Shown piece by piece: positions 1,127 through 23,523 of a stretch of DNA of 64,000 nucleotides. Numbering within the stretch: position 1 is the stretch's first letter; each line of letters starts with the position of its first letter. The stretch comes from Salpingoeca rosetta (Eukaryota; Protista; Choanoflagellata). The translations under genes and the position numbers were made by a program. The stretch covers positions 417,760-481,759 of the forward strand of contig JAWQFM010000031.1 of NCBI GenBank assembly GCA_033442325.1, read 5' to 3'. Below the pieces are notes generated by a model. The model made no database searches and was not told the DNA's origin. It worked only from the letters and a program-made list of their open reading frames with translations.

Positions 1127-3820
1127 TCAAGAGCGGCGCATGAGGTGGCGCACTACAAGCTGCGCGGCGTGGGTGGACTGAACGTCCTGCGGCCACGCCT
1201 GCACGGCAGTAAGGGCGGATTGCGCAACGGCGCTGTCGTCAAGGTCCAACAACACCAAGTTGAGCACATCCATGAGGTCAAAGCAGCACGCGTGCGAGAG
1301 AAGATCGCACAGGTCCTTCGGCTGCTGCAGATACACGCGTGCCAGGCCAACCTCCTCCCACAGCAGGTTCAGCATGCCCGCGCTTGAGTGAATGGAGGAG
1401 AGTCGCACGCCATGACGCAAGCTCATGCCGGCCAGCGCGTTGTGCGTTGCTGCGTACGACCCGCGCCGCTGCCGCCTTCGCGGTGTCAGCGCATCGCCAG
1501 CACGCGGGTGCATCGCAGCCGGCGCCGGCGGGGACATGGAGTGCGCGGGATCAGCACGTGCCCAGGGCATGATCAAAGGAGAGTGCATGTCGCCGGCACC
1601 GCTCTCATCCTGCCGCTGTGCGTGGCCCATGGCGCGAACCAGCGTCGTCAACAGGCGCAGGCGAGACTCGTCCCTGTGCGAGAACACGCCGTACTTGTGC
1701 AGCATGCCCACCACGCCCGTGTATCCGCCCAGCACCGCCGTCAGGAGCGGGCACTGCTGTGTAAAGGCGGCCTCCTCCGTCGTCAGGAAGATGGCACGCG
1801 CCACCACCAGCCGGCACCCCGCACACGCCTCCATATTGCGCACCACACGCCGATCCACATGCATAATTGGATGTGTTGATGTTGCCGATGGTGTTGCCGA
1901 TGGTGTTGCCGATGTTGTGGCGGTGGTGGTGGTGCCGCTGCTGCTGGGAGAGGTGGGGATTGACGTGGCTGTGTTGCTAGCGCAGCCACGCTTCTTTGCG
2001 TCACTGCTGCTGTCGCTGTTGTCGTTGCCTCCCACGTGCTTGCATGCACTGCATGTACTGCTGCGTTTGTCACCATCAGAGTCCGTGAAGCCAAAGCACT
2101 GGGTGAGGAGGACATGCAGGGCGTCGGTGAACCCAAAGCGGCAGCAGCCCGCAGCCACGGCCTGCCAGCACGAGACGGGCACGCGCGCATGCAACTGCGT
2201 GCGGGTGAGAAACTGCAGCACGCGCGACAGGGCAAAGCCGAAGCTGGGCGCGCACATGCTCATGAGGTTGGTGGACACGATGGCCAGCATGGCATCGTCA
2301 AACTCAAACTGCCGGCGCACAAAGTCGAGGCACTTGACGGCACCGCACCGGCACATCTGCCCGAGCAGCGGCCACGCGTGCGTGAGGCCCGGCAGCGTGT
2401 CCGTGTAGTGCTGGCGCCGCAGGTCGAGCGCGTTGTGCAAGCATGCAAGCACAAAGGCGCGGTCGCGGCTGACGGCCGCCTCAATGTGCGGCACGTGCAC
2501 GCGGGCGTACTGCGCGTGGTTGCGCAGCAGATGGTCCAGCAGCGCCACGTTTCCGTCCTCGCACGCGTGCGCCACGGCAATGCTGGCCAGGTCAAGCAGG
2601 TCCTCCTCCGGCACGCTCAGCGAGAGAAAGTAGTCGACCGTGCGCGGGCTGTTGAGCACGGGCGCGTTGGCGTGCAGCGCGTCCGCCACCTGCTGCTGCT
2701 CGGAGTAGTTGGCCTTGCCTGCAAGCAACCGCGCCGCGTCCGCGTGCCCGTTCTGCAGGCTCTGGTCGAAGAAGGCCAGCAGGGACTCGCGGCAGATGAG
2801 CGGGGGCACGCTGTCCGCCACTTTTCCAATGGCATCGAAGATGGCCCGGATGCACGCCACGTGGCCCATCTTCACCGCCACGCGCATGCACAGCAGCATG
2901 GCCGCAGACCGCTGCTTGTGCTCGGCAGCCAGCAGCGGCGGCAGCGTCAGCAGGTGGTGCAGCACGCGCGCCGCGCCAACCAGCGCCGCCACGCTGGCCA
3001 CGTCCACCACGGCCTCCGGCGTCTTCAAGTGCGGCCGCTCGCGCGGGAAGAAGCGCGTGTACAGGCGGACGGCCGACTCCGCCATGCGCGGCGGCGGCAC
3101 CGCTGGCGGCGGCATGACGGCGATGGTGTCGTGCACGAGCTGGATGACCGGGTTGGAGCGGCGGCGCGGCCCGCGCTCTTGTTGCTGCCGGTACACCGCT
3201 GTCACGCGCCACAGCACCTTGTACGGGCGCATCTCATCCACCGTGGCGTGCAGGAACCAGCAGCTGCAGCGCAGAGCACACAGATCGTCCACGCTCAGGT
3301 GCGGCAGCACGTGCTGCTGGATCACCTCCCGCGGCAGATCACACAGCGTGTGCAGGTCATCGTGCTGGTGCTCGTGGTCGTGGTTGGGGCGGTCACGGTG
3401 GCCGTGGTCGTGCATTTGCTGCTGCGGCTGTGTTTGTGAGCGCTTGGCGAAGAAGGGTGAGGGCGGCGTTGTCGTAATCACCGGCACCTTCGGCGCCTTG
3501 CTCGTGGTCATTGGCGCTGCGTCTGTGGCTGGTGCGCCCCAGCGCTGGTTGTAGCGGTGGTAGTACTGCTCCTCAACGGCCACGCTGCTGGACGACGAGG
3601 AGGTCATGGACGATGCTGCGACCCGGTCGGGCGAGCTTGGCACAGAGGCATACGCGCTGTCCAGGCCGCGTGCACTGCTACTGCTGCTGCTACTGGTGGT
3701 GCTGGTGCTGGTGGTGGCCGTGTGCTTGGGCGCTGTGCTGGCGTCGGACGCCATGGAGGACGTGGAGGTCGTCCTCCCGCGGTACCAGCTCATGTTGCAG
3801 GTGAGCTCACGCTGGCTCAT
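1127..3820 (-). CDS. F-box protein with C-terminal ankyrin-like/helical repeats; single exon; start uncertain (ATG at 3820 or downstream)
   Basis: Long ORF with F-box-like LCDLPREVIQQHVLPHLSVDDLCALRCSCWFLH, followed by ankyrin-like units (AVKMGHVACIRAI, SLQNGHADAARLL, ACEDGNVALLDHLL, AVLGGYTGVVGML). Confidence 0.75.
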   Translation of the reverse strand: MSQRELTCNMSWYRGRTTSTSSMASDASTAPKHTATTSTSTTSSSSSSSARGLDSAYASVPSSPDRVAASSMTSSSSSSVAVEEQYYHRYNQRWGAPATDAAPMTTSKAPKVPVITTTPPSPFFAKRSQTQPQQQMHDHGHRDRPNHDHEHQHDDLHTLCDLPREVIQQHVLPHLSVDDLCALRCSCWFLHATVDEMRPYKVLWRVTAVYRQQQERGPRRRSNPVIQLVHDTIAVMPPPAVPPPRMAESAVRLYTRFFPRERPHLKTPEAVVDVASVAALVGAARVLHHLLTLPPLLAAEHKQRSAAMLLCMRVAVKMGHVACIRAIFDAIGKVADSVPPLICRESLLAFFDQSLQNGHADAARLLAGKANYSEQQQVADALHANAPVLNSPRTVDYFLSLSVPEEDLLDLASIAVAHACEDGNVALLDHLLRNHAQYARVHVPHIEAAVSRDRAFVLACLHNALDLRRQHYTDTLPGLTHAWPLLGQMCRCGAVKCLDFVRRQFEFDDAMLAIVSTNLMSMCAPSFGFALSRVLQFLTRTQLHARVPVSCWQAVAAGCCRFGFTDALHVLLTQCFGFTDSDGDKRSSTCSACKHVGGNDNSDSSSDAKKRGCASNTATSIPTSPSSSGTTTTATTSATPSATPSATSTHPIMHVDRRVVRNMEACAGCRLVVARAIFLTTEEAAFTQQCPLLTAVLGGYTGVVGMLHKYGVFSHRDESRLRLLTTLVRAMGHAQRQDESGAGDMHSPLIMPWARADPAHSMSPPAPAAMHPRAGDALTPRRRQRRGSYAATHNALAGMSLRHGVRLSSIHSSAGMLNLLWEEVGLARVYLQQPKDLCDLLSHACCFDLMDVLNLVLLDLDDSAVAQSALTAVQAWPQDVQSTHAAQLVVRHLMRRS

Positions 3821-4640
3821 GGTACATACGGCTTCGGAGAGAGGAAGGGGAATGAGGAGAGGGAGGTGCCTTGTGGTGTGGTGGGAGGTGTGGTGTGGTG
3901 TGGTGTGGGAGGTGTGGTTCGAACCAAGAGAGCCAAGGCTGTGGGGTGTGTTCGTGTTGGAGTTGGATGCTTGCAAGCAAGCAAGCAAGGAAAGGAAAAA
4001 GAAAGTTTACTTGGTGGATTGGCTGGTGAGTGAATGGATGGGATCGATGGGATCGAGGCGGTTGGGGAGAGCGGGGGGGGGGGGCGGTGAGCGTGGTGGT
4101 GTGAGGGCTTGGCTTGGAAAACGGCAGCACAGCGCAGCGCAGAGCAAGCAGAGCAAGACAGCGAAGCAAGCAAAGGAAGGAGTTTTGCGCGCTTGGCTTG
4201 CTTGGCTTGGCTTGTTTTGTGGCTTTTTTGTGCGACGCTAGCCGGTGCCAGGCAACATCACAAGTTGCAGGGTTGCAGCAAAACGCAAAACGCAAACAAG
4301 ACAGCGTGAGCAAGGTTGGCATGAGCAATCAAAGTGAAAGGGTGGCGAAACTGTCAACGTTGACAGAAGTGCGGATAGATAAAAGGGTAGTGGATGCGGG
4401 TAAAATTTGAGGCGGCAAGAACAAGGAGAAAAGACGTGTGTCACACAGGAGACACACCCAAAATGTTTTCTTCGTGGTGTGGAGAGACAAACACTCACTG
4501 CAGTGCCCTTGCCGTGCCATGAGCACGAGACAACAAAGCAAGAGACCACTTTCACGCACATGACGTTCACGCACACAACAATACACGAGACTACAAGAAG
4601 ATACTCTGTCCTGCTGGCCGGCCTCCTGACCGAGGACACC

Positions 4641-7600
4641 ATGTGTGACCCAAAGCCGACAAGGCAACAGTGCGCATCTGAAGCGCCACTAACTCAACAA
4701 GTGAGAGCAGCTCGAGCGACAGACAAAAACCTCCCAGAGCCTCCCAGTCAATTCTCGTTGTTGAATCATGGGAGTAACCGATACTGTTGTAGTGAGCCCG
4801 TGGAGGACATTCAACAGCGCGTACAGGACTCCCCTCCTTCAACGGAAAAGTATCTCGTTCTCATTTGGGTTAGTGGCATTTCATGAGGACTTTGGCTTGA
4901 AAAGATTGCACGGATGGGCGTTTGATTGGTTGGTTAAGGTTGTGCAACCTCATGCGGCACGCACATTTTTCTGACCTAACAAGTCTCCTCAAACTCAATG
5001 TAAAATGCTGCGTGCTGTTTGTTAGTGTGCACTGGCAGAGACTCCACTTGGGCAGGGGCACCAACCTGACGCCAAGAAAACTGATCTGCTGCAGCTTGTG
5101 CAGAATGCCAAGAACCGTGCAACAGACGAAGTATACTTACCTTGTCATCGGGATAACTTTGAAGACCTTGAAGATCACATCAAGTCCAACAAGTGGGCAG
5201 AAGCGTTTGATTCAGTCGTGGCTGTGCTTCAAGACGTTCGTCCCTTTGACATTCATAAGACAAGGTATCTCATCGACCAGAGTCGCGTGTATGCGGAGGC
5301 GATGCAGAGCAAGAACGTCGTCGTCTTCCTCGGTCGATCGGGCGCCGGCAAATCCACCTCCCTGCTCTATCTCTCTGGCTGCAAGATGATCCAGCGTACC
5401 AACGCCTATCGCGACATTGGCCCTGCCCCTGGCGCTGCTCCTGAGGGCTTCAAGGTCAATGGCAACCCCGAAAGCGAGACGGCGTACGTGCGTGGTGTCC
5501 GCATGACAGTGGATTACCTTGTGGACAACGGCGTTATGTTCGGAGATGACGACACAGACGTCCTGATTGTGGACACGCCAGGTTAGTTGCAGCTTTTCTG
5601 TTTCGCACCCAATACACGCACACGCACACATACACACATTCTCTCACATGCATGCTTGATGCACACTTGTGTCCCCACCTCGCCTCAATAACTCACTAAC
5701 TGCTTCCCCACCCCCGCATCCATTCCACAACTCAATACACAGGCATCGGCGACAATTCCGGTCCAGAGGTTGACGTGGCGAACACCATCGGCATCCACCA
5801 CGCCCTCAAGTCATGCAAGGGCTTCTGGCCGGTCATCGTCGCTTCCAAGGATAGTGGCGGCAACGGAGAACTGACCAAGGCGAGCCTGAAAGTGGCCTCC
5901 AACCTCTTCAAGAGCATCAGCAGCATCAAAAGTCGCCTGTCTTTCCTCTTCACTAAGTACCAGAGCGTTGACGAGCATGACGCAATCGCTGAAATGTTCA
6001 AGGTGTTCCAGGAGCAAGCACGGGAGCGCCCTAGTGATGATCCGTACCGTGTCATCGTCCGCGTCATCGCCGCCAAGCTCAAGCAACTCAAGAGTCGGAA
6101 ACAAGCCGGAGATGAGATTGTCCTCCCTCTCGAACCAGATCGCATCGCACTGCACCTCAACGACATCTTGAACAAGCAACCCATTGCCCCGTCAAGCGTG
6201 GCCGACCAACCATCGCTCCTCTCCATCTCGGAGGCAGCCATCGCTGACCAGGCCCGCCTCAACATCGCCGCCATCCAGTTTGCCATGGAGCGTGGCGAGC
6301 ACGACCTCGCCGTTCAGCGCGTCAAGGAGCTGCAGGACCTGCAGGAGGTGGTGCCGTCCGAGGAGGTGACGCGGGCCACAAAGAACGCCCAGCAGGCGAT
6401 TGTGCAGCACCTTACGCGTGAGTTCAACGCTGTGGTGGAGCGCATCAACGAGTTCAAGGATGCTTCTACCGGCTTCATTGCCGTGGATGTGCTGGACACC
6501 CTCACCGCCATTGGCGACGCCACCCGCTTCTTCCAACGTGAGCTGCAAAACCTCGACCTCTCCGCCGTCTCTGCAGAGGTGACGGCCTCCGCCCTTGGCG
6601 ACCTGGTCAACACACTGCAGCGGGACGTGGGCCGCGCTGAGCTCTCCGCCCACGCGCGCGTCAACCAGGCCAACAAGCTGCGCACCCTCGTCAGCGCCAT
6701 CAGCAGCATCCCTGCCGAGCGGTACGAGAGCGCCGCGCAGGGCCTCGCAGACGAAGTGCTTTCGATGCAGCGGCGTGCTGTTGAGGCGCTCGAACAGCGA
6801 CAGCTGCACGAGGCAGGCGATCTAGGCACAGCCACGCTACAGGCTGCAGATGCTTTTGCCGCCCACCTCGACGCCACCCGCACGGCCCAGCTGACAGGCG
6901 CCAGCGTGGGCTCCAGTGGCGCCGGCAGCAGCGGCAGCACATCGTCAACAACAACAACAACAACAACAACAACGACGACGACGACGAGCACTGCCAGCAG
7001 CCAGAAGACCAGCGCCAGCAGCCTCCCTCAGCAGGTGGGCGAGTTCACCCTCACTGGCCAAGTCGAAGTCGAAGCAGAGACCGCCCAGTCGGCGTCGCAG
7101 CGCATTGCTCCCTGGCGGGACGCGTTCATCAAGTCCCTGCGTGCTGCCGTGCATTACCCTGTTGAGCAAGCTCGTCGCACTCTGATCGACCTCACCCCAA
7201 ACAACTTGGGCCTAAAAGGACAGACCGCTGTGGACGCGCTGGCAACAGCGCTGGCCCTCACCACCGATGTGCAGAAGACGCCCCAGCTTGCAGCCGTCAT
7301 CGGCGCACAGCAGCTGGAGTCGCTGCTCGACCAGCTTGTGTTCGTGTGCGACGAGCATCTCACCCACATCATCAACGATATTGCGGAAGTGTGCCAGCAG
7401 GACCTGACCGACGCCCTTCAGCAGGCAGAGCCGCTTGTGCTCCACCTCGTCCGATTCCGCGACTTGCCCTCTGTGGATTTGGCGCGCAAGTACACTCGCC
7501 ACGAGGCCGCAGCGCGTGCAGAGGTTGCCCGGGTCGTGGGCACCGCCCAACAGCTCGTGCGCGATATTTTGCACAACGCGTTTAACAACCACAGTGACAG

Positions 7601-10600
7601 TGGCATACCTTGCTCTCTCACAGCCCTGCTGGCCTCGCTCAAGGCCGCAACGTATGCCAACGAACTGCAGGCTGGCATGATTGACAAGGCCACCGACAAA
7701 CTCATCAGCAGCGTGCGAAGTGAGGAATGCCAGTTTGTTGCCGTCGCCACCCGCATGCCCATCCAGCTCGACAACCCCGACATTGTTCCCAATGTGGCGG
7801 AGGCCATCGCCCGACTCTCCAGCCTGCGCACACTTGGTAGCATCCTTGGCGGTGTCGGTGAGGGCTACACACATGCCATTACTCACGCAGAGAATACTGT
7901 CCAACGCATTGTGGACACGGCCAAGGAGTTCTTTGCCAAAGTCCCAACAGACATCGTCTTTGACAACCCTGCAACGGGCGGTGACGAAGACGTGTCGAGC
8001 CCTTCACCATCGACCACGCGCCTTGACTTCCAGCTCGACCTGAGACGTGTGAGCCGCATCCACCACTTTCTCCACAAGGCGACAAAGGAGTGCAGCCTTG
8101 AAAAGCACATCTCTGGTATAAAGGACTTGAAGAACGTCTTGCAGGGCTCCATGGCCAGCTATGGAACGCTCGTTCGTCTCTACCTCTCCCATGTCAACGC
8201 CAACGTGATCCAAACGTTTGTGAACGATGCGGCTGATGATGCAGTGGCCGCTACCAGACGCCTGAGGATGGCTTGTCTCACGCTCCAGATTCGACTGGAG
8301 GAGCTGCAGCGCATGGAGGATCAGTTCCCAGAACTGCACGCGCTGGCGTTTCCAACGCCGCCACAAGAGCTCATCCCCTTGCGCCAAGATGCAGCAAATC
8401 GAGAATTGGAGTGCCGTCAGCTGAGACAGGACGGACGACTCAATGAACTGCATCGCCACGTGCTGGCTGCAGGCATCTTGCGACAGCTCGACGGCGTCCT
8501 CAAGGGCGCCATCACGTACACCCAGCTCTACCGAAACGCTGTAGAACAAATCACCGACTTCAGCAGACGGGCTGTCCAGAATGTTAACGCAGCAGTTGAA
8601 AGGCGCAGCTTTTTGGAGGTGGCGACCTTGCTCGAGCAGCTTCATGACACGGCCCCCCAGCAGCGGTCAACGTTGGATCAGTCCATCATAACTGCCGTCG
8701 ATGCAACCTACGCCAACTGCCTGAAGCGTGCTCGCCAGATCACCAACGTTAACGGCGACAAATCCCGTCTGCAGCGGTTCGAGGAGCTGCAGCAAGCCCT
8801 CAGCAAGGCAAAATCGACCATACAGCTGCAGGCGCCCGGCCTTGAGCTCGTTACCGCAGAGCAAGCTGACGAGTGGGAGAAGAAGATCGCTGCCGTGAGG
8901 AACACAGTGAGCACATTCCTAACAGATGAGTGCAACCGAGTGGAGAGCGACATGCAGCGATGCTGCTTCGCCGAGGCCCAAACCCAACTGCAGGAGCTCG
9001 CTTCCTGTATCCAAGCTGTTGAGCACGAGCTTGAGGGCTTGGATGAAGCACGCGCGCGCATCAGCGACCTCAGGACTCGTATCCTCAAGGGCCCCGAGGA
9101 GGCAGTCGCTTCTTTTGGGGGTTTGACATTGGAGAAGGCCATCCGCAACCCACCACAGATCTTGACGCACCTTGCCAAGGAGAGCGACCAGGTGAAGAAA
9201 GCCGTGAACCAGCATCTTATTGAGCTGCTGACAGACTTTAAGGATCGCATGTCCAGTGATGACGTGATGAATGTGAACCTGGAAGCAGTGGCTCTGCATT
9301 TGAAACACTTCAAAAAGCTGTGCCCTCAGCACATACAGCAACAATTGGCTGCAACATCGGCTGACATTCTGGCAACGCTTCGCCAGCGCATTGCATCACG
9401 GGCGAATGAAGCCGGAGAGCGCCTTGACCACGATGACTGGGATGGCCTCAAAACTGACGTTGAGCTGATGCGCAAACAGCCTGCGGGCCAGCTTGCCAAC
9501 ACCATCAACGCGCAACTCACGTCCAAGGTTGACGGCATCGCCGAGGACGCCTTCCAAGCGCTCGAGGACCGCAGACAAGACCGGCAGCTCCTCAAGGTTG
9601 TGAAGCGCCTGGCCAAGTGCAACGAGATTGGCGTGCCGACTGCAGCGGCCAAGCTGAAGGCCATGGTGCAGCAAGCGACATCGAAGCTGGGCGTTGAACA
9701 CCAAACAATGGCGCACGTGTTTGCCTCACCCCAACTGACGGAGCCGGACATCGCCCGTGACGTGTCCCAGGACTTTGCACGGAGCGTGGTGCGCGCCCTC
9801 TATTTGGAGAGCAGCATTCAGCTGGCAAACAACTCCATCAAGAAAGACAGGACAACTGGCGGCGGAGGCAGACTGCAGCGTCACGAGACGGACGATGGTG
9901 CGTCTGTGCTCGAGGACGATGGTGCGTCTGTGCTCGAGGACCTCCGTGCATGGGCAGTGAAGTGCTCGAAAGATGTGGCCAAGCTGCAGCAGGACGTGGG
10001 CCATCTCAAGACCGCGCTGGCAGAGCTGGAGCCCTCCAAAGTGGACTGGAACGCCTTTGCATCCGTCAACCCGATGCTGCTGTCGCACCAGTGTGGGCTG
10101 GTTGCATGCACTGGTTCGGAGCTCGCCCGACCCGCAAAGGAGCTTCACATCGCACCAGCTGTTCTGGAGGAGTGCCAGAAGTGCAAGCAGTCGCTCGATG
10201 CAATCGTGTCGGAGCTGGATGACGTGACAACAAAGTGGTTCGACGAGAGCATGGGCATCAACGTGCTGGATGACCAGTACAACGTCAATTCAGAGGAGAT
10301 GCGCAAGGCATACGCACGCCTCCACTGCACGAAGCAGCTCCTGGAGCTGACACTTCCCTTTGCGGCCTATTTTGCAGACGGGGTGGAGGCGGTGCGCTCA
10401 CGCCCGGAGCAGCTGGCCGAGCACGTGCAGCTGCAAGAGGAGCACATTTCATCAGAGCTCCACGCAGCCCAGACGTCACGCAAGTACGATCGGATGAATA
10501 ACCTGATGGCCCACTGGAACAACATTATTGCTCTCACAAATGCCAAGCCACCACCGTCCCTCGGATCCAAGTCAAGGGTTTTGTCGAAGGGCATGCGAGG

Positions 10601-13600
10601 TGGACAGCAAGACCAGCGTTCGTCACATGATGCCCATGGCGAGCCAAGTGTATTTAATTTGAAGCTGGTGAAGGACGTTGAGGCAAACCTCATCCAAGAT
10701 GCGAAGAATTTGGTTGCGGACCTGCATCGCTCCCACACAAACGGCACCATTGCGCACGTTCTCATCCAGCTGCAGACGCTGGCGGACAACTTTCAGTGCG
10801 TCCGCGATGAAGTCACAAGCGATATCTGTGCTTTCTTGGACACACTCGATGACAAGGGCAGTATGCGCATACCCAAACTTGGACTGTATCTTGACCAGCT
10901 GCAGTCCCCAGAGGCACAGCGCGTGCTGCAGGTGTACGATGTGTTCACCGGGTACCTTCGTCGCCTCTTCAACAACAAGATCAGCTCTGTGGGCATCGAC
11001 GACGCGCTCAAGACGCTTCGGGAAGGAGGCATAAACGAACTCACACTCGAGCACTGTGACGAGCTGAAGCGCATGTTTGATGAATTCCTCAAGCAGTATC
11101 ACAAGAACTTGAAGATGATCATAGATGGGCCAAAGGCAGTAGACGAACTTGCTGCAAGTGCGAGGGCTTGTGCTGCCGAGATCACAAAGAACCCAAACCT
11201 TCACGCTCAGGGCATGGAGTGGACGGCTCCAATGAGGTCGCGGCTGCCGACACTGATGGCGCACATCTTTGGCATGTGGACGCTGCACCATGCCAGCAAC
11301 CCCAACCAGGCCCGTGAGGAGTTCCTGCAGCCGCATCCTTCCCAAGCCCTGGCCATCTTTCGCCTGCTCGGTGTTGGCACTGAGAAGGGCGAGCTGCACT
11401 CCAACATGGTGCAGGTCCTGACGGGACAAGGAAAGTCCGTCATCTTGGCTGTCACGGCATCTGTGCTTGCGCTGTACGGCATGCACGCCAGCGTTGCCTG
11501 CTACTCCGAGCACCTCAGCGTTCGCGACTACTACGCCTTCTCATTCTTGTTTGACAAGCTGGGCGTGGCTGAGCATGTTGAGTACGGCACGCTCAACGCC
11601 CTGTGCGAGTCGCACATCAACAAGGAGGGCGACATCCGCGAGCGCGTGCAGCACTTGATCCAAGAAGACAAGTTCCAGAAGCCTGGGTGGATCAAGCGCG
11701 CCAAGGACAAGGCTGCTGCCTTGAAGGACAAAGCAGCAAGCTTCCTGCCTGGAAGTGCCAGTTCCTCCAAGGTCCCGCGCCCTCGCGTGCTGTTGATTGA
11801 CGAGGTGGACGTGGCACTCGACCCAAGCATCATGAGCGACACATACGCGCCCAACTGCAAGGTGACCAACGAGGCTGTCAAGAACTTGGTGATGCACCTG
11901 TGGGACAATCGCACAACTGGACTCACGTTTGCGAAAGTGGCCAACTCAACGCAGTATGAGAACCTCCAACAGCAGTTTGCCAAGCCCTACCACGACCTCC
12001 TCCGGAGCTGCGTGAACGCCATGATTGTTGACCTGCAATCGTATGAGAAACACGGGTACGTGTTTGAGGGCGGCCGCATCGGTTACAAGCTGCACGACAC
12101 CGTCAACTACAAGATGCGCATGCGCTACAAGACCTTGTTCGCGCTCATGCACGAGCTTGAGAAGGTGGGAATCGACGTTCACACTTCAAAGGACGTGGCC
12201 AATGAGGTTGCCTTCTTCATCAACTGCGGCGCGTTCTCGTATTTTGAGGTGCAGCGCACATTTGCTTGCACGCTCGGCGTGACGGGCACGCTCAAGGACC
12301 TGTCTGCTCCCGAGTTTGGGGTGCTGAAGGAAGACTACGGCATTCACACGTACACGGTGATGCCGTCCATGTTTGGCGCGTCGCAGCTGAAGCCGTTTGA
12401 GACAAACGACCTGATGATTGTGTCGGCTGATCATTTTCACCTTACCATCACCCAGGAGATTAGCAAGCGCCATGGGCAGGGCCGTCCGGTGATTGTTCTG
12501 TTTGAGACGGAGCGAGAGCTGCAAGAGTACTATCGCCACGACTCCCTCGGCGCCTTCATGCAGCACTTGCAAATCCTGAGCGAGACATTGGATGCTTTGG
12601 AGAAGGATGATATTGTGTGCAAGGCAGCGCAGCAGAAGCGCATCACGCTGTGCACACGCTCGCTTGGGCGCGGTGTGGACTTCCAGGTGCGTGACCCGGC
12701 CGTTGGAAAACTGGGCGGTGTGCACGTGCTGCAGACGTTCCTGGCAGAGACGATGGCTGAGGAGCGGCAGTGCATGGGGCGCACGGCTCGGCAGGGTGAG
12801 CCGGGCAGCTACTCGATGGTGCTGTGCCGTGAGCAGCTGAAGAAGTTTGCCGTGGATGATGACGAAATGTACAGGTGCCAAAGTGCGGTAGCACTTCGCG
12901 ACTACCTGCGCAAGAAGCGCGATGAGGCACATGCAGTAAGGTTTCAGGAGACCAGCGAGGAGGCAAGGTCCTTGAGCGAGCAGCACGAAGAGTCGATGGC
13001 GTTGGTCGTGGATCTGCACCACGAGCAATTCGAGTCAGTGATCAACACACTCGAGCGATGGAATCATACCCACACAGTTCTCCCACATCTTTCTCGGACT
13101 CTGTATGCATTGGATGTCACTCTCTCCATGGGCGCAGCTCTCAAGCAGACACAGGAGGCGATGGAGGATGTCTTTGGACGCGTTGAAAAGATCCTCGAAA
13201 ATGAAGGTCTGTACAACAAGACTGGTATTGCTGTTCAAGTGGCCGCGTACCGCAACTACAACGCAGAAGCGGACCAACTGCTCCAATTGTCCGGGTGGGA
13301 GCGGGAGCCGGGTGATTTGAAGGACTTCGTGTCTGGCCTGGAGGTGAACGGCGGCTGGGGCAACGAAGCGATCGAGGTTGCGCTTCAGCGCGCCAACACG
13401 GAGAAGGACGTGTCGCAGGTGATTTTGATTGGCGACGCACCAGCCAACACACCAGATGAGGTGACGCTGAAACGAGATTCGAAGGGCGAACAGTACTGGT
13501 CCAACGTTCCCGGGTATCCCGAGTTTGCCACATCCACGACCGCCGAGGCCGAGCTGCAGAAGCTGAAAGAGAAAGGCATTCCGGTTCATGCGTTCTACAT

Positions 13601-13784
13601 TCACCCGCGCGCAAAGAGCTTCTTCGAGCACGCCGCTCAAGTGACTCGTGGGCGCTGCGAGTTCCTGAACATCAACGCTGCATCTGGGGCTGTTCAGCTC
13701 ACGGATCTTGTTTCCGAAGAGCTGCTGCGGCGCGTGGGTGGCGATAAGCTCGTCGACACGTACCGAGCCACTTACTGCAAGTGA
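4641..13784 (+). CDS. Giant (~2,940 aa) protein: N-terminal P-loop GTPase, long helical rod, SecA-like SF2 ATPase, C-terminal vWA domain. Exons ~4641-4868, 5026-5581, 5743-13784
   Basis: GTPase: G1 VVFLGRSGAGKST (5332-5355), G2-like PESET, G3 DTP|GIGD across intron 5582-5742, G4-like FLFTKY. SecA-type motifs: QVLTGQGKS (~11412), LSVRD, EYGT, LIDEVD (~11800), GVTGT, TRSLGRGVDF, GGVHV, ERQCMGRTARQGEPGS (~12762). vWA: LDVTLSM (~13110), AYRNY, GGWGNEAIEVAL, LIGDAP. Splice phases are compatible; the first exon is less certain. Confidence 0.85.
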
Positions 13785-19292: not shown

Positions 19293-22200
19293 CTACACAA
19301 CGTCCTCACCCACCGCCCTTCTCTCCACATCATCACCAGGGTCGCTGACATCGTTGGAAAACGCCGCATACCCACGACCACCGCCGCCGCTACTGCTGCT
19401 GCCTGTGCTGTCACCCCTGCCTGCCTGTCTGTACCCCGTGAGCGCATACACGCCCCTGTGCCTCATCCGCCTTACCGCACGCCCCAGCGCCCGCCAGCCG
19501 AGCGTAACGCGGTCAAGCCTCCCTCGCGCGTCGTCCACGCGAACAGAGAGCACGTACCCGGCAGCCATCGCCGTGCCCACAGAGAGGATGAGGCCAACCC
19601 ACTCCGGATACGCGCCAAACCCAACTGGCAGGTCACCGAGCATGAAGCTGCACAGCGCGGCTAGCAGCGCATATGGGGCCTGCGTCACCACGTGCGCAGT
19701 GAGGTTGCACCGGCAGGCGATGGAGGAGAGGATGGTGGTGTCGGATATCGGGGAGCAGTGGTCGCCAAAGACGGCGCCCGCGAGGATGGACGAGATGGTG
19801 CCGTACACAACAGTGCGGTCGCAGGGGGCGGCCTGGTGTGCAGCAGGCAGGATGAGCGGAAACACGATGCCCATCGTGCCCCACGACGAACCCGTCACAA
19901 ACGCCAGCACGCCAGAGAGGAGGAAGGTGAGTGCGGGGTATGCGCCCGCCTGCACGCTGCCGGCGAGCGACGCGCTGATAAACGTGGCTGTGCCGCACAG
20001 CGTGAAGGCAGAGCCCACCGCCCACGCAAGCAGCAGCACAAGCACAGCAAACGTGAGGCTGCGCACCCCTGCCACCCACGTGTCCAGCGATGCCTGCAGG
20101 CACATGATGGGCGGGAACTTGCGCGCAAACCACACAACGTTCCCAGCAACGTCCACCCGCTGCGCCCACGTCAGCAGCCACACCGTCAGGGTCCCCAGCA
20201 CGCTGCCGTACAGCAGCGCATGGTACGAGTCGGAGTTGCCAAAGATGTGCTCACCAGAGAGGGAGAGGCCCAGCTTGCGACACTGCTCAACACCAGTCAC
20301 CACCAGCGCAATCACCACCATCACCGTCGTTACGATGACGGGCACGGCCGCGTTCCACCACCGCTTGGGCGTGTCTGGATTCGGCTCAAACTGCTTCAGG
20401 TCCTCATCAGCATCACCACCACCGCCCTCACCCCTGTTGTCGTTGTCATCATCGTTGTCGTTGTCGGTGGTGTGGGTGTCGCTCGCACCGTGGTTGTGAG
20501 CAGCGGCGCTGCTGCTGTTGTCGATGAACGTCATGTCCTCATAGTAATCATGACGGTCGTTGTTGTTGCTGCTGTTGGTGTTGCTGCCGTGTCCGTGTTG
20601 GCCTTCTTGTCCACCTGTCCTCGCCACCACACCGCCACTACCAAGCGTGGACGATGCTGACGATGAGGACGAGGGCGGTGACGTCACGCCGGACATGAGA
20701 TGGGAAGTTTCGTCCGCCGCATTCCCTGACGCAAGATGCCGCGTGCTGCCGGTTTTGCTGGGCGGGCTGGTGCGTGCGGAGACCGACACAGGCGTGGTTG
20801 CACCGCTGCTGTGGATGTCAACAGATGTCCATGTGTTTGGGGACGTGGAGCCAGACACCACTCCCTCTTCTCTGCCTGCCCTCTCTGCTCTGCCTGCTCT
20901 CGCCTTACTCTGCTCTTCACCACCATTACCGCGCCCATTCGCAAAAGCAGCCGCGTTCTCACCACCATCATCGCCGTCATCGTCGCCGCCATCACGCTCG
21001 TCCCCCAAGATGGGCGCAGTCTTGCTGTTGTAGCGGCCGCGCATCTTGCGCCGCCGCGTCGATGCCGGCAACGCCTTCAGCCCCATGCGCACGCCATCCC
21101 TCTCACCACCATTACCAATATCACCGATATCACCACCATCACCATCACCACCCATTACAGCACCATAGCCAGCGCGACGATCACCACCACCACCACCACC
21201 ACCACCACTGTCACCACCACCACCACCGCCACCAGCACGACCGCGTACACGCGCCTTTCGTTCCGCAGCCAGCATGGGCCCAAACTCTCGCTCGGCGATG
21301 ACAAGCAGCAGCTGCAGCGCAATCATGATAAACGGGTAGTAGCGGCCAGGGATGGTCTTGACGAAGATGACAAATGCGCTCGAGTCGTAGCACGTGACAT
21401 CCTCGCCAGTGGACGCAAGGTCGCGAAGCGTGTTCTCGATCAGGCTCAGCTCAAAGCCGACCCACGTGGAGATGGGGGACACGGACGTGACGGGGCTGGA
21501 CGTTGCGTCGACGAGAAAGGCCAGCTTCTCCCGCGATATGTGCAGCATATCCGTGATGGGACGCACCGTCTGTCCGACGATGAGCGTGTTGGCGATGCCG
21601 TCGAAGAAGATGAGCAGCCCCAGCACCATGGTGACGACGGCGCCGGCGCGCGGGGTGCGCGCGTAGCGGGAGAAGGCGCGCACGAGGCCGTCCCCGCCGC
21701 CAGACTTGAGGATGCACGCGACCATGCCGGAGAGGAACCAGGTGAAGAGGAGCACCTCTGCGTGGCCGCGGTCTGCCAGCGCATCCAGAATCATCGTGTC
21801 AAAGGAGCGCGTGAAGGCGGCAATGGGGTTGAACCGGTAGATGATGAAGCACGCCATGAACACGCCCGTGTACAGGCTGAACAGCACGTTCCGCGTGAAC
21901 ACCACCGCGGCAATGGTGAACAGCGGCGGCAGCAGCGACAGCCCGCCGTAGATGACGTGCGTGTGGAACGACAGGGACGCCACCTCCGTGGCCGGGTCGC
22001 TGAAGTTGCTCTGCAACGCCAGCTGCAGGTGGTAGGTGTGGTAGCCGACGTCCCTGTCCGAGACGGCAAAGGTGCGGTGGGTGTCCAGGGCGTTGAAGAC
22101 CGGGTCCACCGCGGAGAAGTTGCCGGCGGAGACCACGTGCTTGTGGCGCACGACTTGGTAGTAGATGAGCGTCTCATTGGTGTATGGCGTGCGCGCAGGG

Positions 22201-22331
22201 TCCCAGGAGAAGTCTGCTGTGAAGGTCCACGGCTCGCTGCGCAGAGCAACCACCGGCGTGTCCTGTATACTCTCCAGCACCAGCTGTGCGGCAGTGCCAG
22301 GCATGCTGCCGAGGAGGCCAGCAGCCACAAG

Positions 22332-22363
<32 letters not shown>

Positions 22364-22364
22364 T
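19293..22364 (-). CDS. Na+/H+ antiporter NhaC-family (IT superfamily) membrane transporter with N-terminal signal peptide; single exon
   Basis: Motifs LSLLPPL, ISREKLAFLVDATSSPVTSVSPISTWVGFE, FVTGSSWGTMGI and GAVFGDHCSPISDTTILSS, with many hydrophobic segments. Confidence 0.9.
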
Positions 22365-23523
22365 TGGTGGGGTTTGCGTTGTGGGTGATTATGTTATGGT
22401 TGGTTGTGGGTGTTGTTGCGCCCTCCACTCCTTCTTCTGCTTTGGAGGTCTGCTGAAAAATGGGTGAATTCATACACAAATCCTCCACAACTGCGTGAAT
22501 TTGACAGGGAATGATGATGAGGGTCGTTGGTAGTGTTGTTGTTGTTGTTGCTGTTGTTGGTGTGTTGCTGGTATTAGTGTTGTTGTTGGAGTGTGTTGGT
22601 GTTGTTGTTGGAGTGTGTTGGTGTTGCTGTTGGAGTGTGTTACAACTTCGCATGTGTTGCTTCGTGCTTGTGTGTTGCATGGTGCTGCTTCCCTGCAAGC
22701 ACGCAAACGCCCACATTGCAATTGAGCATCAGTTCACTGTCTCTCTCTCTCTCTCTCTTGGTTTGAGGGCAACAGTGTCAACAAACAAAGCGAGCATGGC
22801 GCACATGCTGGCTGGTGTCACATTGACAAAGAACAACGAACAACAGCAGCACACGCACACAAGCGAAGGGAAAGGAAACAACAGCACATGAGAGAGAGAG
22901 AGAGAAAGCAAAGGATCACAGCTAGAAGGAGGAGAAAGCAACAATGAAGGGCAAAATGAACGACATGCACGTGTGTAATGCAAGTGTATGTGTGTTTGTG
23001 TGTGTGGCGAGTGTGTGCGCGTGCAAGAAAGAAGACACCACAATGACGAATGACGACACGAGCAAGTCAAACAAGCAAACAAACAAACAAAACCAGCAGA
23101 CATGAGACGAGCACGCATGCTAAAACAACAGCAAAGGTGAAACGGGAACAGAAGAACGACGAACAAAGAACGACGCGTGAGGAAAAATGTACAAGTGCAA
23201 ACAAGCAACGGTCAGCAGCAAGAGAAATTGTGAAGGGTATGATTGATTGTGTAAGTGTGTGTGTGTGTGTGTGTAAGTGCGGCTGGCTGTGTATGTGCGG
23301 TTGTGTTGTGCACTATCCTGGGTTGAACAGGGTGACAATGCACAGTGGGCATGGAGAATGGCCTGAGATGGGCAATGGGGGGGGGAGTGAGCGGGGAGTA
23401 TGTGACAAACAACAACAACAGCAGCAGCAGCAGCGGCGGCAGCAGCGTGTTGTGGTGACGATAGCACACACGCCTGCCAACCCGCCACCATTGCCATCGG
23501 TGTGCAAAGTGTTGGTGTCACAA

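Follow-up and report, generated by a model that had tools for sequence, protein, structure and literature searches.

How a motor of the SecA type comes to share a choanoflagellate polypeptide with a GTPase and a von Willebrand factor A (vWA) domain, and what such a protein might do, is the question raised by a gene at positions 4641-13784 (forward strand) of a 64,000-nt stretch of the Salpingoeca rosetta genome (assembly GCA_033442325.1, contig JAWQFM010000031.1, positions 417,760 to 481,759), referred to here as the window. Canonical SecA is a motor regarded as specific to bacteria and plastids and tied to the SecY channel. A sequence-only reading of the window had proposed one spliced polypeptide with two nucleoside triphosphatase (NTPase) modules and a closing vWA, had argued that it is not a secretion motor, and had offered it as a candidate defence or remodelling machine. 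Here we show that this nuclear gene is intact, that its three exons encode a soluble protein of 2,941 residues, that the motor of this protein is derived from SecA and lies outside the Sec translocase family, and that the gene belongs to an existing, automatically annotated and uncharacterised family.

Translation of the window gave a spliced coding sequence of 2,941 codons in three exons with no internal stop, which we compared with its best database relative, a transcriptome-derived protein (P0001). The exons and introns are:

4641-4868, forward strand: exon 1, residues 1-76 (76 codons), ATG at 4641, donor TGG/GTTAGT
4869-5025, forward strand: intron 1, GT..AG, 157 nt; the P0001 alignment is colinear across the junction
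5026-5581, forward strand: exon 2, residues 77-261 and the first base of codon 262; acceptor ...GTTAG/TGT, donor CCAG/GTTAGT, phase 1
5582-5742, forward strand: intron 2, GT..AG, 161 nt, phase 1, which interrupts the DTPG Gly codon
5743-13784, forward strand: exon 3, residues 262-2941 and the stop, one uninterrupted frame

Exon 2 supplies a helical lead-in together with the half of the GTPase that bears G1-G3; splicing to the acceptor at 5742/5743 restores the DTPG Gly codon and leads on into the 2,669-codon open frame (5775-13784). The junction that the sequence-only reading had placed at intron 5582-5742 was thus borne out in translation, as were the single polypeptide and all of the motifs that it had quoted. 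P0001 aligns colinearly from residue 52 to 2941, across both splice junctions, and two full-length paralogues in the same genome carry an intron at the identical codon and phase 1 after DTPG, as well as the conserved exon-1 motif followed by a donor. This motif (..EP.ED..R....P.S.EK....W), at the C-terminal end of exon 1, is kept in both paralogues and in P0001; the exon 1 product has no recognised domain and no hydrophobic signal-like segment. Among the three copies the ratio of non-synonymous to synonymous substitution (dN/dS, omega) was 0.1-0.58 in every region, and we therefore take all copies to be under purifying selection. Because P0001 is colinear, the paralogues share the introns and homologues in one frame include intron-less bacterial open reading frames (ORFs), we conclude that the GTPase-motor-vWA fusion is real and that the window copy is intact and constrained. 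CA/TG-rich microsatellite tracts lie in intron 2 (window 5600-5650) and in the paralogue introns.

The spliced protein is laid out as follows, with motifs read from the translation:

5167-6452, forward strand: predicted AIG1/GIMAP/Toc-like TRAFAC GTPase with flanking helices, residues 124-498, interrupted by intron 2
5332-5358, forward strand: GRSGAGKST, GTPase P-loop (G1)
5467-5490, forward strand: SET(A), switch-I threonine
5572-5581 and 5743-5744, forward strand: DTPG (G3)
5949-5957, forward strand: FTK, G4-like, without the Asp of NKxD; F-T-K is nearly invariant in the GTPase family alignment (A2)
6453-10745, forward strand: central linker of about 1,430 residues (499-1929), Ala/Leu-rich, low in Pro and Gly
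10746-11330, forward strand: family-specific helical domain, residues 1930-2124, preceding the motor (profile 'Nhel')
11331-12881, forward strand: SecA-type DEAD motor, NBD1 and NBD2, residues 2125-2641
11421-11438, forward strand: TGQGKS, motor Walker A
11799-11810, forward strand: DEVD
11823-12260, forward strand: alpha/beta insert of about 146 residues between motifs II and III (model residues 360-505), at the site of the SecA PPXD
12276-12293, forward strand: GVTGTL, motif III
12768-12806, forward strand: QCMGRTARQGEPG, motif VI
12885-13019, forward strand: single 45-residue helix (model helix 714-758), equivalent of the long SecA scaffold helix
13086-13775, forward strand: C-terminal vWA domain, residues 2710-2939, followed by the last 2 residues of the protein
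13113-13127, forward strand: DVTLS, MIDAS-type loop (DxTxS)

Hidden Markov models built from the family place the GTPase at residues 124-498, the helical domain at 1930-2124, the motor at 2125-2641 and the vWA at 2705-2941. Walker A, DEVD, TGT, motif VI and the MIDAS residues are invariant columns in a 60-sequence family alignment (A1), and the motif set is far beyond chance. The linker had no Pfam match and no usable match in an Atlas feature search, and its composition suggests that it is helical. Apart from the motor core, the protein showed no membrane-like or hydrophobic segment; neither a signal or transit peptide nor an amphipathic anchor was seen, in keeping with the earlier remark that a targeting peptide is missing. 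Residues 651-682 of the linker (window 6909-7004) form a Ser/Thr run with 13 consecutive Thr, where P0001 has a gap.

The relationship of the motor to SecA was clear both by structure and by sequence. An AlphaFold2 model of the C-terminal module, defined as the last 1,012 residues, had a mean pLDDT of 86.9 and a pTM of 0.82, and a Foldseek search of the PDB with this model returned SecA or SecA2 chains as its top 36 matches (E 3e-17 to 2e-10), followed by DinG/XPD and DDX21 at about 1e-6. The family profile matched SecA alone among PDB sequences at E 1e-16 to 1e-9, followed by Mss116 at 5e-5, and hhalign against an alignment of true SecA proteins gave a probability of 99.8 and an E value of 5e-30 over 431 columns. 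Pfam SecA_DEAD (25.1 bits, cut-off 24.6) and P-loop_SecA (31.5 bits, cut-off 27) were passed narrowly, whereas the NCBIfam SecA models scored 22-57 bits against cut-offs of 725-1,100 (TIGR00963, 22.4 against 800). In the model, NBD1 bears Walker A and DEVD and NBD2 bears RGxDF and QxxGRTARQG. Residues 1-207 are wholly helical; VIA alignments to SecA start at model residues 91-96, and the second half of the helical domain superposes on the N-terminal helices of SecA NBD1. The modelled insert between motifs II and III matches the SecA PPXD in position, size and order of secondary-structure elements, and anchored hhalign threads it onto the PPXD, pairing the DY.V..D..I hairpin. Homology of the insert to the PPXD is plausible, and PF01043 is absent from the precomputed Pfam domains listed for family matches.

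The VIA alignment to Escherichia coli SecA (2fsf_A) reaches model residue 775 and SecA residue 784, and similarity in the profile alignment ends at SecA position 571. The helical wing domain and the two-helix finger (IRA1) have no counterpart, one short helix (762-772) lying between the scaffold helix and the vWA. PF07516, which true SecA matches carry, is absent from the precomputed Pfam domains listed for family matches, and the zinc-binding/SecB-binding tail (PF02810) is absent, the protein ending directly after the vWA. Because the wing domain, the two-helix finger and the zinc tail are missing, the motor is not a Sec translocase, as the sequence-only reading had argued.

The C terminus of the model adopts a Rossmann-like alpha/beta vWA fold, which is terminal throughout the family. 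Its DxTxS residues (D790, T792 and S794) and D897 are invariant in the 60 sequences and form a putative MIDAS metal site. No Pfam vWA family matched at E<0.1, and the PDB profile search returned no vWA chain at E<0.01.

Because an intron splits the G domain of the window protein, the model was built for the orthologous part of P0001, from an alignment with 54 relatives (pLDDT 87.1). Foldseek placed GIMAP7 at the top, followed by MxA, mitofusin, GBP and Toc34, and eight of the ten nearest ESM Atlas clusters were AIG1/GIMAP families. G1, the switch-I Thr and DTPG are conserved in the family alignment. Among 54 family members, MMR_HSR1 matched 44 (best 5e-8), AIG1, Dynamin_N and Septin matched a few, and Pfam AIG1 (PF04548) matched six at E<0.01 without reaching its gathering score. 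Sequence searches with the GTPase returned mostly P-loop matches; those of its profile to midasin, SRP54 and ABCE1 covered P-loop stretches only and were rejected as signs of kinship. The TRAFAC-like GTPase of the sequence-only reading can thus be refined to an AIG1/GIMAP/Toc-like module by the fold of the model. G domains of the AIG1/GIMAP/Toc class act by nucleotide-dependent dimerisation.

The gene is far from alone. A word-index search found 477 relatives of 1,500-3,600 residues in a transcriptome-derived close relative, bdelloid rotifers and Hexamita (many copies each), Reticulomyxa, Tetrahymena, Blepharisma, EukProt transcriptomes, a gammaproteobacterial metagenome-assembled genome (MAG) with a U-box, and many metagenomes. 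An exhaustive profile search returned 1,703 clusters at E<=1e-30. Relatives that are shorter or consist of the motor alone turned up in mosquitoes, a spider, Hydra, Brachionus, Ectocarpus, a diatom and a Bacteroidota MAG, in a search that reached true SecA only at E>1e-8. A survey of one genome per bacterial species yielded homologues in Legionellales and other gammaproteobacterial MAGs, Chlamydiae, two Wolbachia and one actinomycete MAG. The sequence-only reading had supposed that related giants may exist in other protists; they extend to animals and intracellular bacteria. From about 200 homologues collected, 91 sequences (the window protein and 90 others) hold the GTPase, helical domain, motor and vWA in one frame, and bacterial contigs encode the full architecture in uninterrupted ORFs of 3,050-3,464 residues between stops. 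The C-terminal 1,012 residues are 32-50% identical to those of family relatives, and relatives are annotated automatically as 'SecA family profile domain-containing protein'. Linker length ranges over 832-1,824 residues and the N-terminal extension over 0-849, with U-box, jacalin, GBP or ankyrin additions that vary across the family; in the choanoflagellate copies the extension is short (123 residues, the family median being 280) and U-box, lectin and ankyrin additions are absent. Members of the arthropod/Wolbachia branch consist of the motor only. Together, these results reveal a large and ancient family that spans several eukaryotic supergroups and keeps the exact order of its parts in many eukaryotes and in obligate intracellular bacteria; the bacteria found are nearly all host-associated intracellular lineages.

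The neighbourhoods of the bacterial copies are those of bacterial genomes. The Legionellales copy (L008) sits between dnaE and recJ, a true bacterial context, and the contig of another relative (P0007) carries URO-D, a response regulator and MgsA; the 1.4-Mb contig of P0060 looks eukaryotic. About 2 kb downstream of the Legionellales giant lies a gene for an ankyrin-repeat protein with a PARP catalytic domain (L008:15192-17522, reverse strand), a typical effector-like neighbour, and four large TPR_12/NPHP3-type repeat proteins flank the giant gene on the P0007 contig (L025:1-9798 and 20330-22738). In Wolbachia wCon (L017:12131-21886), a second giant ORF (3,252 residues), with weak motor matches only, directly follows a 1,515-residue SecA-like ORF; phage WO is reported to have two different SecA homologues, to which this pair may correspond. 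A pattern scan of viral contigs gave one unrelated vWA match only, and a 'phages' collection gave ordinary SecA alone, at 23% identity, in Staphylococcus and Listeria records resembling host DNA. These records (OR844989.1, OR844990.1 and others; Staphylococcus/Listeria 'phage', up to 282 kb, unannotated) contain canonical SecA-like sequence and probably include host DNA.

Next, we placed the motor in a tree obtained by a quick LG+G4 search, with several long branches and no fixed root within the family. The phylogeny against SecA that the sequence-only reading had called for separates the family from SecA (100, starred branch), so that the grouping with canonical, wing-bearing SecA that would have spoken against a repurposed motor was not found. 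The window copy pairs with P0001 (100, starred), Wolbachia is nested in a mosquito/spider branch, and a U-box-bearing bacterial clade is neighbour to the copies of bdelloid rotifers (97, starred). Members from bacteria and from eukaryotes are interleaved, and the starred branches force at least four label changes between bacteria and eukaryotes.

A count of paralogues, also called for by the sequence-only reading, found two more full-length copies in the 55.4-Mb genome (68 contigs), both on another contig (G000:C15) and 82% and 74% identical to the window copy in the C-terminal module, for a total of three copies and one tail fragment; the two contigs concerned measure 0.8 and 1.5 Mb. Synonymous divergence (dS) among the three copies (window 5745-13781 against the paralogues) is mosaic by region, the lowest value being 0.06 and the highest above 2. 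Residues 501-650 of the window copy and paralogue B differ by a dS of 0.06, residues 1500-1930 by 1.6. The tail of the window copy stands apart: its scaffold helix is 39-44% and its vWA 67-71% identical to those of the paralogues, which are 89-91% alike there. The mosaic points to segmental gene conversion or segment exchange among the paralogues. The tail fragment, about 100 kb upstream on the same contig (G000:C31:328405-329286; L022:6405-7286), is a stand-alone scaffold helix and vWA of about 290 residues with one stop upstream and the same ...TYRATFCK stop at its end. Its identity is highest to paralogue A (92.5%), lower to paralogue B (82%) and lowest to the window copy (63%). The fragment could be either a pseudogene left by truncation or a cassette that serves as donor in gene conversion. 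A CA/TG-rich tract like those of the introns directly follows its stop (L022, after 7286). Upstream of the window copy, on the opposite strand, lies a 953-residue ORF (window 1127-3988, reverse strand) that matched no Pfam family.

We found no functional study of the family in the literature, as the sequence-only reading had anticipated; the mentions are passing ones (Amoebophilus effector domains, the phage WO 'eukaryotic-like SecA' and one Legionella gene), and none of the papers found describes the GTPase-rod-motor-vWA architecture. A SecA domain (wHa_3920/3930) is listed among those domains of the phage WO eukaryotic association module whose closer kin are invertebrate rather than bacterial (Bordenstein & Bordenstein 2016, PMC5062602), and a 'eukaryotic-like SecA' is named in that module (PMC5062602, PMC9203015). 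Legionella fallonii lfa2470, annotated SecA DEAD-like, was listed among genes acquired from eukaryotes (Gomez-Valero et al. 2014, PMC4256840), and a SecA-like ATPase is mentioned in giant actinobacterial toxins (Kaur et al. 2021, PMC8195603).

What, then, might the protein do? The explanation that we consider best, and to which we give slightly less than an even chance, is that this SecA-derived GTPase-vWA giant would be a vWA-guided, ATP-driven polypeptide remodeller in host-microbe conflict. Since the SecA motifs, the insert at the clamp site and the scaffold helix are retained, the motor would still handle extended polypeptide rather than nucleic acid; since the finger and wing are lost and there is no membrane or targeting segment, it would no longer feed the SecY channel. 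The dimerising behaviour of the AIG1/GIMAP/Toc class suggests that the N-terminal module is an assembly or docking switch, which, by nucleotide-dependent dimerisation, would control assembly of the giant or its docking at a target surface. The terminal vWA, after the manner of midasin and MoxR-vWA pairs, would use its metal site to bind a protein ligand by an acidic residue, and the motor, one helix away, would use ATP to grip and pull an extended polypeptide so as to unfold, extract or dislodge the ligand. A MIDAS-type vWA one helix after the motor recalls midasin and MoxR-vWA, and on these features together we favour such a GTP-gated, vWA-guided, ATP-driven extractor or unfoldase. In eukaryotes its role would be in host-microbe conflict, as cell-autonomous defence, and the copies in Legionellales, Chlamydiae, Wolbachia phage WO and Amoebophilus-like bacteria would be host-directed effectors or mimics. 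The case for conflict, a role already raised by the sequence-only reading, is circumstantial: lineage-specific expansions, variable N-terminal additions, mosaic paralogues, a spread among bacteria confined largely to obligate intracellular lineages, a patchy distribution and exchange with intracellular bacteria. A bolder version, which we regard as speculative and rather improbable, is that a SecA-derived polypeptide motor was redeployed before or early in the eukaryote radiation as a GTPase-gated, vWA-guided extraction machine of cell-autonomous immunity and was repeatedly captured as effector or decoy by Legionellales, Chlamydiae, Wolbachia phage WO and Amoebophilus.

Several observations weigh against this picture. 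All coarse dN/dS values are below 1 and give no sign of positive selection. At the G4 position the family reads TK[YFC][PTSDQ] and the window copy TKYQ; the guanine-specifying Asp is absent. When the insert and the PPXD were compared alone, hhalign gave a non-significant probability of 7% locally (P 0.005) and 0.06% globally, values too low for the insert to be called a PPXD. Because the branches are long and the family root is not fixed, we claim no direction of transfer. Finally, the transcript check suggested by the sequence-only reading was run on three 2026 RNA-seq runs, and reads were found on the strand of the gene, nearly all of them 95-99% alike with fixed differences and patchy cover, for which reason we assign them to a paralogue; these runs contain no splice joint and no read on 4200-5184. 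One of the runs (X17) has about ten times more family reads (369, against 37 and 34 in the other two of X16-X18, one study of similar depth; window 5185-10100); they derive from a paralogue, and expression may depend on condition. A further run (X1) was rejected as RNA, since it behaves as DNA, one contig spanning intron 1.

The same observations have to be weighed under other explanations. The missing splice joints and the paralogue origin of the reads would suit a wrong gene model, in which the GTPase exons and the 2,669-residue ORF are separate genes or the copy is silent or decaying. We hold this very improbable, given the colinear P0001, the identical intron position in two paralogues, a DTPG Gly codon completed only by splicing, the fused architecture in 91 homologues including bacterial single ORFs, and an intact frame with omega below 1. 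Less probable again, to the point of being negligible, is a genuine organellar or bacterial Sec-pathway SecA, or a contaminated assembly: Pfam scores above cut-off and the automatic 'SecA family profile' annotation could be read that way, but the NCBIfam scores fall far short, the wing domain, two-helix finger and zinc tail are missing and the motor tree sets the family apart. The gene has spliceosomal introns shared with paralogues on contigs of 0.8 and 1.5 Mb, and on this ground bacterial contamination is rejected, a point on which the sequence-only reading had made its proposal depend.

More serious, although still unlikely in our judgement, is that nucleic acid is the substrate of the SecA-like module, which would be a helicase, translocase or RIG-I-like superfamily 2 (SF2) sensor, with the vWA and GTPase serving signalling or assembly. 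The fold is SF2 DEAD-type, DinG/XPD and DDX21 are the next-best structures, Mss116 matches the profile, and the insert is not provable as a PPXD by sequence alone; yet every helicase match is poorer than those to SecA by 10-11 orders of magnitude, the module keeps a motif VI of the SecA type, the scaffold helix and an insert where SecA has its PPXD, and the Pfam search found no nucleic-acid-binding accessory domain. We consider equally unlikely a housekeeping machine for assembly or membranes, whether a dynamin- or mitofusin-like tether or fusogen or a midasin-like biogenesis factor. Such a role would account for purifying selection in all regions, for a long linker that resembles a stalk, and for the matches of the G-domain model with its following helices to MxA, mitofusin, atlastin and GBP. 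It accords poorly with the absence of any transmembrane or amphipathic anchor among the features found, with lineage-specific expansions and repeated exchange with intracellular bacteria, and with a distribution in which the named database matches come from scattered lineages and none is vertebrate, fungal or plant, model organisms not having been searched exhaustively.

Whichever role it has, the protein joins a SecA-derived motor without channel-engaging parts to a GIMAP-like GTPase and a vWA, in a family of well over a thousand clusters. If the motor handles cytosolic polypeptide, it would be a new kind of protein-remodelling machine; it would then also be plausible as a further, new branch of immunity in protists and invertebrates, and as a currency that recurs in gene exchange between hosts and symbionts. 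Under the bolder version above, the family would add a new class of eukaryotic immune NTPase beside STAND, GBP/IRG and GIMAP, with a representative in a genetically tractable choanoflagellate. Functional tests may be more practical there, because S. rosetta has three copies where rotifers and Hexamita have many.

Finally, the comparison with known systems defines what is new. From SecA and SecA2 the window motor differs in sequence (about 15-19% identity, outside the SecA clade), in lacking the wing domain, the two-helix finger and the zinc/SecB-binding tail, probably also a SecYEG context, in the vWA that follows its scaffold helix, and in being built into the end of a soluble, GTPase-bearing giant (about 3,000 residues). 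The uncharacterised 'SecA family profile' or 'SecA DEAD-like' giants of bdelloid rotifers, Reticulomyxa, Hexamita, Tetrahymena, Blepharisma and Legionellales MAGs, together with L. fallonii lfa2470, phage WO wHa_3920/3930 and the Amoebophilus effectors, are the gene's own family. Among known GTPases, AIG1/GIMAP and Toc33/34, from the septin-like branch of TRAFAC, stand closest to the N-terminal module. In midasin and in MoxR-vWA pairs, force from the ATPase acts on a protein that the vWA grasps at an acidic residue. Midasin (Rea1) and the MoxR-vWA or chelatase-type pairs are alike in logic only, an ATP motor being coupled by long helical elements to a substrate-holding MIDAS vWA, which in midasin stands at the extreme C terminus as it does here; their motors are AAA+ rings whereas the window motor is of the SF2 SecA type, and there is no homology beyond the vWA fold. 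The giant immune GTPases of animals (GVIN/VLIG, GBP and IRG) are large soluble proteins with a G domain of the dimerising class and extensive helices, and form lineage-specific multigene families. No SecA-like motor or vWA is known in these families. The window protein resembles them in these traits, and GBP and MxA are among the Foldseek matches of the G-domain model.

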